The translations under genes were made by a program, and so were the position numbers. From sequence record NC_004629.1: a stretch of DNA of 64,000 nt, one strand, 5' to 3'. This document shows, piece after piece, positions 24,656 to 31,599 of the stretch; positions within the stretch are counted from its first letter, which is position 1, and every line of letters starts with the position of its first letter. Below the pieces are notes generated by a model. The model was not told where the DNA came from and did no database searches. It saw only the letters and a program-made list of their open reading frames with translations.

Positions 24656-26767
24656 TTAAAACCGCATATATGCGGGCTGATATGGTTTATACATACGTGT
24701 ATCAAAGTCATTAAAATCAATTGCGATATCATACTTCTCAAATGATTCTTTTAGCATCTGATAAATGATTTTATTTTCATCAAAATTATTATTTTTATCA
24801 ACATAACTTTCTAATGACTCTGTGATCTCAAATGGAGATTTAATACCCATAATAGCTTCAACCATTGCCTGACTCCATTTTAGAATGTCATCTGACCTTG
24901 TTGAGATATTCGGTTCATCTTCTGTATCGAGAGTACATTGATATACGACTGTTTGTGAATCCTGACCTTTACGGTAAATTCGAGCAATAGCTTGTTCTAG
25001 AATGTAATGCCTAAACGGTGAATTAATTGTCACCATAGTATCAGCCATCGTCATACGGACCGCTGTTGAAAGGGAAGCATATGTAGCTACCAATGGATTT
25101 AATTTAGGGTCTTTCTCAAATCTACTGATTATTTGAGGTAAATTGTCATTGGTTTTACCATACACCACCGCCGGATGCATACCTAATTTATTGGTGTACT
25201 TATCAACAGTATCAACAACCTCAACAAACGATGTAAATGCAATCGTTTTCTTCATAGTTGATTCAGTGATACCAACCCAGTCAATATACGGTACCATGTC
25301 CACATGGCACTGAATGCGTTTAGCACCTAAAACCCTTCCCAAACATTCACCTTGTATCTTTAGCATAACGTATTTTATAACTGATTTAATATCTCTAAAA
25401 GCAGCTATTTCATTACGAGGTAAAGTTGGCTCTATAAACATTTTTTCATATTGGTTAGATTCTTTAATTTCTTCACCAATGTATCGCGGGTCTTGATTCT
25501 TCTGAATTATTTTAATCAAATTCTTATAGCGAGCGAAACCATCTTTCTGCGCCTGGGTCTTAAGAGAGTTCTCGTGTATCGCCATTAGTTTAGCCCAATA
25601 CTTCTCATCTTCTGGTCGGCGCGCAGCATAGAACTTTACACGTTCTCTAATAAAAGCTTCACAATCACGTTTAATGGCATTAAGAGTATACTGTGATCCA
25701 TTTGGTATCTTGATACGATACGCTTTTATCCTCGGTGGTAAAACCTCAGTATCTTTCTTTTCAATGACGTACGCAATTAACCCAAAGCGATGTTGGACAA
25801 TATCTAATCCTTTCTGTGTCTCTTTTCCAAATGCTTTCTTAAAACGTTCTTCAACCTCATTGGTGAAGAGATCGTCTAATACTCTTAATGCACTTACTAA
25901 TTCAGAACCAAGTGCTTTAACAGGGGTACCTGACGCTAATAATCTGTTATTAGAGTTAGACATAAAACATATTTGCTGGAACTTAAGAGATTGTGCAGAA
26001 TTAGGATCGTTCATATTGTGTGATTCATCCAGAATCACCGTAATGTTCTTACCTTTGAATATACCGCTTCTTAATAGATCAATTATTTTATCTTGCGCCT
26101 GGTAATGGGATATAAGTATTCTTTGACCGTTGTAGGCTTTATCATCAATGGTCGACCATACTTTTTGTCTTTCCTTATACATCTCAATAATAGATGGCTT
26201 CCATATTAGATCAATAGACTTCTTTTCACAAACAACTATAATGATATCCGACTCAACCATTTCAGCAATAGCCATCGTCATGAATGTCTTACCAGTACCA
26301 GGTTTACCTGCAACAATATCACCACGTAAACCATACTGGTCAATTCGATAATTATAATTTTCAAAATAAGCTTTTTGAGACTCATCTGGTGTAAATGTCA
26401 ATTTGTCTAACATCTTGAAATTGAGTCTACCTGGTACAGAGTTGGTATCTACAGGACGAGTATTTTTTAACCAGGTATATTGAAGCATTGCTTCACGGAT
26501 GGCATTAACAGTTTTAATAGAGATGTATCTACTTCTATAATTCTTTACTGCTTCTAGCATGTAATATATTTCAGGAGCAAAGAATTTATAAAATGAAATA
26601 CTACGACGACTAACCGTGTTAAATAACTGCGTAGCTAATTTAGTGGTTCGCCAATACTTGTTAATATCTCTAATGAATGCAGCACCATCAAAACCACTGA
26701 TGATAATTTCTTGATCAGTTTCAGTAATTGATAGCGAGCCCATTAGCTTCCTAAATGAGTCTATCAT
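24656..26767 (-). CDS. SF2 (SNF2-like) helicase/ATPase (703 aa)
   Basis: GKPGTGKT Walker A, VILDESH motif II, ASGTP motif III, QAIARIYRKGQ motif VI. Confidence 0.88.
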   Translation of the reverse strand: MIDSFRKLMGSLSITETDQEIIISGFDGAAFIRDINKYWRTTKLATQLFNTVSRRSISFYKFFAPEIYYMLEAVKNYRSRYISIKTVNAIREAMLQYTWLKNTRPVDTNSVPGRLNFKMLDKLTFTPDESQKAYFENYNYRIDQYGLRGDIVAGKPGTGKTFMTMAIAEMVESDIIIVVCEKKSIDLIWKPSIIEMYKERQKVWSTIDDKAYNGQRILISHYQAQDKIIDLLRSGIFKGKNITVILDESHNMNDPNSAQSLKFQQICFMSNSNNRLLASGTPVKALGSELVSALRVLDDLFTNEVEERFKKAFGKETQKGLDIVQHRFGLIAYVIEKKDTEVLPPRIKAYRIKIPNGSQYTLNAIKRDCEAFIRERVKFYAARRPEDEKYWAKLMAIHENSLKTQAQKDGFARYKNLIKIIQKNQDPRYIGEEIKESNQYEKMFIEPTLPRNEIAAFRDIKSVIKYVMLKIQGECLGRVLGAKRIQCHVDMVPYIDWVGITESTMKKTIAFTSFVEVVDTVDKYTNKLGMHPAVVYGKTNDNLPQIISRFEKDPKLNPLVATYASLSTAVRMTMADTMVTINSPFRHYILEQAIARIYRKGQDSQTVVYQCTLDTEDEPNISTRSDDILKWSQAMVEAIMGIKSPFEITESLESYVDKNNNFDENKIIYQMLKESFEKYDIAIDFNDFDTRMYKPYQPAYMRF

Positions 26768-26832
26768 TGCATTTTTCCTTAAGGGGTATGTAAATATAAC
26801 TCTAAGTCATAAGATTAGCTAACGAATAAAAA

Positions 26833-27035
26833 TACGCACAGTGCAATGATATAGAGCAAGGCAGTTTGCGTAAAACGCACTGCACTTTAAGGGGGTGATC
26901 CAGTCGTAAATAAACCGGGGTACTAAAGTATCGTCAGGAACGACACGAACCCCAACTACGGTGCCTTGCTACTCACCGACCTCTAGATAGGGGTCGGACC
27001 TATTACATTAAAGGAGCCCACCAGGGGCTCCTTTA
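26833..27035 (+). ncRNA. Candidate structured non-coding RNA (about 170-200 nt) ending in a terminator
   Basis: ORF-free. 81/160 G+C over 26841-27000 by hand count versus 14/50 and 10/60 in flanking samples. Perfect 9-bp long-range stem 26855-63/26962-70 and a 9-bp hairpin 26976-97. Strand inferred, not proven. Confidence 0.6.
27009..27035 (+). terminator. 11-bp hairpin terminator
   Basis: TAAAGGAGCCC-ACCAG-GGGCTCCTTTA. Confidence 0.8.
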
Positions 27036-27063
27036 TGCCATTCATTATAAATTAATTTAAATC

Positions 27064-27071
27064 TATATTAC
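27064..27071 (+). promoter_or_regulatory. Early promoter core TATATTAC
   Basis: AATTTAAATC-TATATTAC upstream of 27118. Confidence 0.6.
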
Positions 27072-27117
27072 AGGATTACCATAAAGATATTTATCCTTTT
27101 ATAATGAGGAAAAGATT

Positions 27118-27513
27118 ATGTCCGATATTAATAGCACCAATGTAACAGATGAATTAGTACCTTATTTTCCATCGGCGGATGCCATTACTAGTTCTACTAT
27201 TAGGGATGAAGTAATTCCTAATATTTTGTTATTCTACAAGAATGCTTTTAGTGACTTCCAACACGTTAGTAATATCACAGGTACTAACCAGATTGCATCA
27301 GGTTATTTACCAGGTGTAGGTTATTATTTCGAGTATAGTGTTACCGGTAATGCTAATCTTATTCCACCTGAAGCAATTAAAGTATTACGTAATGTAATCA
27401 CTAAAAATGGATATAAAGATGACATTACCATCACACCAAAAGGTTTTGGCCTAATCAATTGGTTCATTGTAAGAGTATACGTAGATGAGCAAATTAAGAA
27501 GACTACTCAATAA
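27118..27513 (+). CDS. Hypothetical protein (131 aa)
   Basis: GAGGA RBS. Confidence 0.75.
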   Translation: MSDINSTNVTDELVPYFPSADAITSSTIRDEVIPNILLFYKNAFSDFQHVSNITGTNQIASGYLPGVGYYFEYSVTGNANLIPPEAIKVLRNVITKNGYKDDITITPKGFGLINWFIVRVYVDEQIKKTTQ

Positions 27514-30996: not shown

Positions 30997-31599
30997 ATGC
31001 AGCGCAATAATGACCCGCAGCAAGTAATCATGTCGATTGAGATGTACAATAGCCTACTGGCTATGGCTAATGATTCACCTCATTACACGACAAAACTTAT
31101 CCAACGTCACGTGCGAAAGATGAATCCTTTTTTACAACCTGCACATCTAAAGAATGTCAGAACTAAGGAAGCTATTCGGTCCCAACGTATTCGTGAAGCT
31201 CGGACTTTCTTCGAAGCCAATCATAGAAAAATTCTGTACGCAAAGGTTGATATGGGTAACTGTAAAAAAGGAGATGATCCGGTTTACTTCCCATGCATAT
31301 CTGAACGTATTGCCAAGAATAGACAACTAATCCAAGTTCGTCATGCCAATGAAGTTGGTTATGGACGGTGCATCCGGTTGGTAGAGGCTAAATATCTCAC
31401 AACCATTATTCCTGATGGATATATCCAAGGAACTGGGCCGTATAAAAAATATCTTGTTAAAGAGAATGGTCCTTACGATATCCGTGAACAAGAAGAAAAA
31501 CGTAAACAAGCTTTTTCGAGTGAGATAGCTAAGAAGTTTGAGTTCAAACATGATTCTTACGATATGGATAATCTCAAAAAGAATTATTATACACAATGA
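30997..31599 (+). CDS. Basic hypothetical protein (200 aa), paralog of 56280-56663
   Basis: GGAG RBS; N-terminal 80 aa align with the 56280 ORF. Confidence 0.75.
   Translation: MQRNNDPQQVIMSIEMYNSLLAMANDSPHYTTKLIQRHVRKMNPFLQPAHLKNVRTKEAIRSQRIREARTFFEANHRKILYAKVDMGNCKKGDDPVYFPCISERIAKNRQLIQVRHANEVGYGRCIRLVEAKYLTTIIPDGYIQGTGPYKKYLVKENGPYDIREQEEKRKQAFSSEIAKKFEFKHDSYDMDNLKKNYYTQ

Follow-up and report, generated by a model that had tools for sequence, protein, structure and literature searches.

A structured RNA gene of phiKZ-related jumbo phages carries a conserved complement of the host 16S rRNA tail and may act as a Shine–Dalgarno decoy

The window analyzed in this study, a stretch of 64,000 nucleotides (nt), corresponds to bases 186001-250000 of the Pseudomonas phage phiKZ, with 100% identity to AF399011/NC_004629. 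Between the genes PHIKZ203 and PHIKZ204, at positions 26833-27035 of the window (phiKZ 212833-213035), lies an element that is very probably a structured RNA gene and that belongs to an undescribed RNA family of phiKZ-related jumbo phages, absent from Rfam. Its most informative part, which an earlier sequence-only reading of this DNA did not mention, is the segment UAAGGGGGUGAUCCAGUCG at 26888-26906 on the + strand, which is complementary to nucleotides 1524-1542 of 16S rRNA with two G.U wobbles. From this complementarity, we consider it somewhat better than an even bet that the RNA acts by pairing with the 16S tail, where the anti-Shine–Dalgarno (anti-SD) sequence resides. For the more specific outcome, in which the RNA would serve as a decoy for or blocker of Shine–Dalgarno (SD) recognition, we estimate a probability of roughly 0.35-0.45.

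No other block of the family is conserved as strongly as the 16S complement, hereafter the mimic, in which 12 of 13 consecutive columns are invariant among 20 sequences whose mean column identity is 59%. In its near-invariant family form it reads UAAGGGGGUGAUCCAGYC (UAAGGGGGUGAUCCAGCC in most relatives; the segment GGGGGUGAUCC is part of it), and it is placed between the helices P2 and P3 described below. The Pseudomonas 16S rRNA ends in GGCUGGAUCACCUCCUUA-3'. An exact 49-mer ending in GGCTGGATCACCTCCTTA was present in many Pseudomonas genomes, and in P. putida this 49-mer ends exactly at the final position of the Rfam small-subunit rRNA model. From A1542, the pairing extends to G1529 with one G.U pair and then enters helix 45, where it follows the 3' strand as far as 1525 or 1524. 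The predicted energy of the duplex was -25.3 kcal/mol with a 14-nt 16S tail, the best value on either strand of the 64-kb window, and -33.5 kcal/mol with an 18-nt tail. The next best site in the window, inside the open reading frame (ORF) of PHIKZ209, reached -19.0 kcal/mol. For comparison, the best SD upstream of 64 sampled ORFs (at least 120 aa) gave -10.9 kcal/mol, the mean of these SDs was -5.6 kcal/mol, and the mean at internal control positions was -3.6 kcal/mol. When the window was searched for the exact complement GGATCACCCCCTT, only the element itself and one chance site in PHIKZ209 were found. The second-best 16S-tail complement, AAGGAGATGATCC at 31268-31280 inside the PHIKZ209 frame, is most likely a product of chance.

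The mimic is unpaired in the structure supported by covariation, in a junction where it is invariant and accessible, and the predicted cost of opening it is about 7 kcal/mol, leaving a net energy of -25 to -30 kcal/mol with the 18-nt tail. The sequence is also that of a textbook SD, and small proteins are often overlooked, so it could be the true ribosome-binding site of a tiny unannotated ORF. However, no AUG, GUG or UUG was found at SD spacing (4-12 nt downstream) in any subgroup, the sole in-register GUG lies inside the SD itself, and the frames that follow vary in length and sequence between members. The search for a small ORF behind the SD found none, and no ORF there is conserved. The same locus might instead act as DNA, for example, as a protein-binding site or an origin, but the compensatory changes include G.U pairs, which argues for an RNA. 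We regard both of these explanations as scarcely credible.

The earlier reading had described the element as lying in a GC-rich, ORF-free gap of 350 nt, and this description was accurate. The G+C content of 26841-27000 is exactly 81/160, the flanks have G+C fractions of 0.30 (26768-26840) and 0.18 (27041-27117), and no ORF of at least 30 aa occurs in the gap on either strand, the longest having 27 aa. That it matched no known RNA family was borne out too: in a search of the region 26700-27150 against Rfam 15, no family reached its gathering score and none meaningfully overlapped the element at E <= 10. ARAGORN detected no tRNA or tmRNA at the element, and six further family members had no Rfam match at E <= 1. 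The minimum free energy of the + strand was -75.3 kcal/mol, as compared with -55.0 +/- 4.5 kcal/mol for 200 dinucleotide shuffles (z = -4.5), none of which equaled it; for the minus strand, the z-score against dinucleotide shuffles was -3.6.

At least 25 relatives of the element were found in phiKZ-related jumbo phages. According to blastn, the element is unchanged in about 47 phiKZ-like isolates and has partial matches in far more distant jumbo phages, namely PA1C/PS119XW, PhiPA3, Phabio and 201phi2-1, whose helicases share no more than 51-58% identity with the phiKZ enzyme. Viktualia, D6 and pPa_SNUABM_DT01 came to light with additional queries. Another 17 or so members came from three pattern scans of the IMG/VR database, in which they lie on jumbo-phage contigs 223-307 kb long or on pieces of such contigs, and the DNA polymerase of one of these member groups is 43-48% identical to the polymerases of phiKZ-related phages. 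The IMG/VR patterns demanded GGNGGTGATCCA, and the isolates found by blastn are the independent evidence for conservation of the mimic. A locus search with the helicase protein returned the PA7 copy alone, and blastn with the group A element matched no isolate. In the other loci, the element always occupies an intergenic, unannotated gap of 260-320 bp. Small deposited coding sequences labeled as hypothetical proteins overlie it in pPa_SNUABM_DT01 (L196, 2524-2646) and Viktualia (L197, 1517-1606), and these are probably mis-calls.

The members share a common plan: a promoter box, the 5' strand of helix P1, the hairpin P2, the unpaired conserved stretch, P3 around P4, the motif ACGG, the 3' strand of P1, and a terminator. 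In phiKZ, P1 closes a multi-helix junction and is formed by AGCAAGGCA (26855-26863) with its partner TGCCTTGCT at 26962-26970 (3' strand UGCCUUGCU). P2 is the hairpin GCAGUuuGCG-UAAAA-CGCA-CUGC (26861-26883), whose outer bases overlap P1. P3 pairs GGGGU with ACCCC (GGGGT and ACCCC in the DNA; 26917-21 and 26949-53) and encloses P4, in which UCGU (26931-34) and ACGA (26940-43) flank the loop CAGGA (26935-39). The junction AACUACGG (26954-26961) contains the ACGG that is near-invariant in the family. A further hairpin, P5, consists of CCGACCUCU-AGAU-AGGGGUCGG (CCGACCTCT-AGAT-AGGGGTCGG in the DNA) at 26976-26997 and belongs to the phiKZ-type subgroup only.

Two alignments were used to evaluate this fold because a plain MAFFT alignment of all members misplaced the 3' half, so that RNAalifold recovered only P1 and part of P4. 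The first was a curated, gap-free alignment of 19 sequences, in which the helix strands were picked by hand and their order was confirmed by a script for each sequence. In this alignment, 99.4% of the cells were paired and 15 of 18 pairs changed on both sides, whereas sliding the 3' partner by 1-3 columns lowered the paired cells to 31-39%; the curated alignment leans towards the fold because it was selected to fit the structure. A more independent test was provided by a covariance model built from five sequences of one subgroup. This model found 23 members, including the window copy (26850-26974, + strand, 33.5 bits, E = 6e-6), and in the Infernal alignment of these members, 90.6% of the cells were paired, 21 of 25 pairs changed on both sides, none of 500 shuffles matched this, and the slid controls gave 29-38%. 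The results showed that four helices covary strongly across the family. In P1, 4/7 pairs covary in the curated alignment and 7/7 in the Infernal alignment, and its inner pairs A-U, G-C and G-C are invariant in the former and near-invariant in the latter. P2 is a hairpin in every member, with differing sequences (CAG/CUG, UAC/GUA, CAA/UUG, UGU/ACA, CGU/GCG). P3 has both-sided changes in 5 of 6 pairs, and the inner pairs of P4 covary.

All stems quoted in the sequence-only reading were found where it placed them, and of its five helices, those corresponding to P1, P2, P3 and a P4-like stem are the four that covary, across at least 23 relatives. Its fifth, P5, recurs with changed sequence in phiKZ-type relatives only: by eye, without a formal count, a hairpin of differing sequence stands at this position in PA1C, PhiPA3, Phabio, 201phi2-1, Viktualia, L150, L132 and D6, and it is not present in TATG-type members. 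The P5 loops of the phiKZ-type members (the window, L002-L005, L197, L150) share a motif resembling CUAAUCUA or CUAUUCUA. A pseudoknot or alternative pairing of AGTGCA with TGCACT, also proposed there, was rejected, since the relatives do not preserve its upstream half and this half is located 5' of the predicted transcription start.

Four lines of evidence agree in placing the RNA gene on the + strand. About 30 cells of the Infernal alignment are G.U pairs, the covariance model matches every member in one orientation only, and the promoter box, which resembles the middle or late class of phiKZ, and the terminator both point in this direction. The published middle-promoter motif of phiKZ, AAanTTACc, is centered near -24, and the late-promoter consensus TATG, with G as +1, was experimentally defined for the non-virion RNA polymerase (Yakunina 2015, PMC4666361). 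The window has a middle-promoter-like box AAAAATACG at 26828-26836 (+ strand) and a TATAG box at 26850-26854 (+ strand), which would place the start at G26854 (phiKZ 212854), within a few bases. In all nine phiKZ-type members, the sequence (T/A)TAC ends 18 nt (19 nt in L132) upstream of the G of TATAG, a match at the level of sequence. In every member, TATAG (phiKZ type) or TATG (other subgroups) is found directly at the P1 5' strand or no more than about 10 nt away from it. TATG abuts P1 in most non-phiKZ-type members, so that the transcript there would begin at the first base of P1; the group A box lies about 8 nt further upstream.

At the other end, an intrinsic terminator with a 10-bp stem, AAAGGAGCCC/GGGCUCCUUU, the loop ACCAG and a following UUUAUG occupies 27010-27037 on the + strand (stem 27010-27034). 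The bases 27010-27040 read GGAGCCC ACCAG GGGCTCC TTTATGCCAT and fit the phiKZ terminator motif BCCYCCCCHWWDGGGRRGGBYTTATKYYGT, which describes 61 mapped terminators (Putzeys 2024, PMC10914365). The terminator had already been noticed from the letters alone, with a stem counted there as 11 bp. An equivalent stem followed by TTTATG or TTATG comes after the element in every member, and in 201phi2-1 this stem contains a G.U pair that is workable on the + strand only. Because the (T/A)TAC upstream of TATAG resembles the published middle-promoter motif, the predicted primary transcript would run from 26854 to about 27036, have a length of about 182 nt, and belong to the middle class. This agrees with the earlier proposal of a discrete, structured RNA that is non-coding, measures about 170-200 nt and stops at the terminator; covariation, promoter box and terminator all favor such a transcript.

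The terminator lies upstream of PHIKZ204 (27118-27513, + strand), and many short transcripts from phiKZ 5' untranslated regions arise by premature termination (Putzeys 2024, PMC10914365). The element could thus be a cis-acting leader, riboswitch or attenuator of PHIKZ204, or, as the sequence-only reading had offered, a leader of the mRNA of the SNF2/DEAD helicase PHIKZ203 (24656-26767, minus strand). However, the G.U pairs would become A.C mismatches on the minus strand, which excludes the reading on that strand, and the promoter and terminator signals are on the + strand. Nor does the element stand regularly ahead of homologous genes that share its strand. The helicase is divergent in phiKZ and lies downstream of the element on the same strand in PhiPA3, additional ORFs separate the two in Phabio and Viktualia, the downstream genes vary between phages, and the gene after the element in PA1C is convergent. 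PHIKZ204 also has an early-promoter-like box of its own, ATCTATATTAC at 27063-27073, after the terminator and before the gene. Phabio, D6 and L132 have this box behind the element as well, so that the order of a terminator and then an early promoter is conserved. A role as leader is therefore very improbable.

Some structured RNAs of Pseudomonas work by titrating a protein, and the earlier reading had seen a possible RsmA site in the AGGA of the P4 loop. If so, an RNA-binding protein of host or phage (RsmA/RsmN, S1, Hfq or a phage factor) would recognize the SD-like stretch, the GNRA hairpin or the two together, and the likeness to an SD would reflect the preference of that protein, in the way that RsmY/RsmZ act via SD-like GGA motifs. 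However, the loop is GNRA (GGGA, GAGA, GCGA, GUGA) in 20 of 21 curated members, phiKZ with its CAGGA being the exception, and GGA is not kept, so that the RsmA idea falls. Most mimics read GGGGGU, a GGA loop occurs in less than half of the members, and each RNA has a single SD-like site against the many in Rsm sponges. The conservation spans 14-19 nt and tracks the 16S rRNA into GAUCCAGCC, far past any known protein motif. A protein sponge is thus quite unlikely. The common A-to-G change from GGAGG to GGGGG keeps the pairing with 16S rRNA through a G.U pair and loses the GGA motif to which RsmA responds, and the GGGGG form may be favored in order to avoid RsmA.

Two further explanations accept the match to the 16S rRNA and give it another meaning. 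In the first, the RNA would be antisense to unfolded or nascent 16S rRNA and would block late 30S maturation, or form a long duplex for RNase III, instead of acting on mature ribosomes. Over 5-6 nt (CCAGCC/CCAGUC), the mimic also complements the 3' strand of helix 45, a strand that is base-paired in mature subunits, and a second contact may exist, in which ACGG and the 3' strand of P1 pair with 16S nucleotides at about 1497-1514. The best non-mimic duplex falls in the same register in every member (CUACGGyGCCUUG against CAAGGUAGCCGUAG, with 10 contiguous pairs in group A), its z-scores against shuffles range from 0 to -3.6 with 23/24 negative, and the invariance or near-invariance of ACGG and of the inner P1 pairs is unexplained by base pairing alone. 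On the other side, most of the single z-scores are weak and the related sequences are not independent, the second block is locked in P1 once the RNA has folded, Phabio has no extension into helix 45, and a lytic phage gains little by stopping the assembly of new ribosomes. We consider this explanation unlikely. In all members, ACGG and the 3' strand of P1, CUACGGUGCCUUGCUAC (26954-26970 in the window), resemble the reverse complement of 16S at about 1497-1514, and the P1 5' strand is similar to the sense sequence CAAGGUAG. Such a resemblance may be left over from an inverted 16S 3' terminus or mark a second 16S contact, and the RNA itself may derive from an inverted copy of that terminus.

In the second explanation, the RNA would be a protective cap that makes the 16S terminus double-stranded and so shields host ribosomes against 3'-exonucleases or against single-strand-specific toxin RNases with the anti-SD as their target, as a means of anti-defense or ribosome preservation. 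In the phiKZ-type and TATG-type members (UAAGG), the pairing reaches the terminal A1542 and gives a blunt duplex, and the predicted expression is middle to late. Idle ribosomes that decay from the 3' end of their 16S rRNA, and toxins that cut the anti-SD, are documented in other bacteria (PMC8406268, PMC13284704), which speaks for a cap. However, nucleases of this kind are not known to act in Pseudomonas infected by phiKZ, ribosomes with such a cap would be unable to use SDs as well, and A1542 is left unpaired in group A and 201phi2-1-type members. The cap is, in our judgment, about as improbable as the antisense role.

Returning to the decoy, we propose the following course of events. The + strand gene would produce a structured RNA of about 180 nt. 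The RNA polymerase of the phage itself would probably transcribe it from a promoter of the middle class, and transcription would stop at a terminator of the standard phiKZ kind. The product would fold into a P1-closed junction bearing P2 and P3 around P4, the latter GNRA-capped in relatives, with the extra hairpin P5 in phiKZ. Its exposed, extended SD without a start codon would pair in trans with the 16S 3' tail (anti-SD 1529-1542, possibly to 1524) of host 30S subunits or idle ribosomes and would hold them far more tightly than any mRNA does. With the docking site for mRNA filled, SD-led initiation would be damped or re-partitioned from mid-infection. The element, its conservation, fold and strand, its signals resembling a promoter and a terminator, and its 16S complementarity are shown by the sequences; we infer that the transcript accumulates, that it binds ribosomes, and that this binding has an effect. 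In vitro, initiation is inhibited by oligonucleotides that pair with the 16S 3' end, which makes the chemistry of a decoy plausible.

Several points weigh against this proposal. In single-sequence folding, the mimic was only about 40% unpaired. The invariance of the mimic among IMG/VR members is partly circular because the search patterns demanded part of it, and the hosts of the isolates are all Pseudomonas with one shared 16S tail, which leaves no host variation to compare the mimic with. The genes of phiKZ use SDs themselves, as seen from the mean of -5.6 kcal/mol against -3.6 kcal/mol at internal controls, and the benefit to the phage is uncertain because an abundant anti-SD blocker would also hit phage translation. 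In a search with a further model (R2) confined to the 8 kb on either side of the helicase, no member was found in Goslar, RP12, RTH11, pEa_SNUABM_54, OBP or EL, of which OBP and EL also infect Pseudomonas; only some phages of the phiKZ group may have the family, or its members may be sited elsewhere in those six genomes. Lastly, the main texts of the transcriptome and Grad-seq papers on phiKZ and 201phi2-1 describe other short RNAs and do not mention this locus, and the transcript may already be listed there as a candidate whose 16S match went unnoticed.

In the comparison of mimics, L229 carries GAUCCAAGG. The proposal predicts a specific RNA-rRNA duplex, a specific behavior in sedimentation and a specific mutant.

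A few observations were made beside these. Extended 16S complements may occur in other phage contexts: the small IMG/VR contigs L170, L181, L183 and L191 carry, about 50 nt ahead of an ORF resembling an HNH endonuclease, the sequence AGGAGGTGATCCAGCC, which complements the 16S tail perfectly over 16 nt, and the RNA model had no match in L170 or L183, the two that were searched. A possible minimal relative with P1, mimic and terminator and without P3/P4 was seen in L228 (3771-3847, minus strand; 28 bits, E = 0.006), where AAAGGG could pair with a downstream CCCUUU. L157, a metagenomic jumbo-phage contig, alone among the members has tRNA-Trp and tRNA-Asp genes (60-136, 872-948) on the same strand, 0.6-1.5 kb downstream of the element. 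Elsewhere in the window, a group I catalytic intron lies at 396-717 on the minus strand (RF00028, 92 bits, E = 2e-22, full-length model match).

In the takeover of translation by nucleus-forming jumbo phages, the phage mRNAs have to leave the phage nucleus and compete for host ribosomes. To our knowledge, only proteins have so far been implicated in this takeover, for example, a ribosome binder of phiKZ, and searches of the literature turned up no phage RNA described as an SD mimic or as aimed at the 16S tail. A conserved RNA that looks abundant and bears the strongest possible complement of the anti-SD gives a handle that is open to direct testing. The element would tentatively be the first natural trans-acting RNA directed against the anti-SD tail, capturing 30S subunits so as to re-partition or silence initiation, or capping and preserving ribosomes. 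If it binds 30S, it would provide anti-ribosomal antisense agents in Pseudomonas aeruginosa with a precedent from nature and would represent a new class of decoy RNA. Even with the mechanism wrong, it is a solid new structured RNA with four covarying helices, one of them with a GNRA cap, and with promoter and terminator signals of its own, and it matters for the annotation of phiKZ-like genomes, where the locus is now blank or mis-called as small hypothetical proteins.

Studies of phiKZ and 201phi2-1 by ONT-cappable-seq and Grad-seq have provided short RNA candidates that are likewise short, structured and bounded by terminators, one of which, upstream of gp182/gp277, is conserved among jumbo phages (PMC10914365, PMC11512511, PMC8545117). 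The candidates described in these texts sit elsewhere (gp182, PHIKZ221, PHIKZ302, p40, PHIKZ298), and none is reported there to match 16S rRNA. Two factors, the Val-tRF of Haloferax (PMC5711459, PMC11009984) and the RMF protein, sit in the region of the small subunit where mRNA binds, in competition with it. The former is a tRNA fragment and works by means other than anti-SD pairing, the latter is a protein, and neither is viral.

Among cellular elements, the SDs of mRNAs, including extended ones, complement the 16S 3' tail as the element does, with the core GGAGG or GGGGG followed by UGAUCC. In contrast to their 4-9 nt, the complement of the element spans 14-19 nt, has no start codon, and stands in the conserved junction of a structured, terminated RNA; its predicted duplex is 2.3 times tighter than that of the best SD among the sampled ORFs of the window. 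The STAB-SD 5' stabilizers of Gram-positive mRNAs, such as cryIIIA, are SD-like sequences that are not used for initiation and are thought to bind 30S subunits. They resemble the element in this respect, but they work in cis, guarding the 5' end of their own mRNA from 5'-exonuclease, whereas the element has no downstream message and its host is Pseudomonas. RsmY, RsmZ and CsrB are also structured decoys that imitate ribosome-binding sites, but they titrate RsmA/CsrA by many GGA loops, and what the single site of the element matches is rRNA. 6S RNA, like the proposed decoy, imitates a nucleic-acid ligand of a core machine and sequesters that machine. It mimics an open promoter and targets RNA polymerase, while the element has another shape and no match in Rfam; if the decoy is true, it would be the counterpart in translation of what 6S RNA is in transcription.

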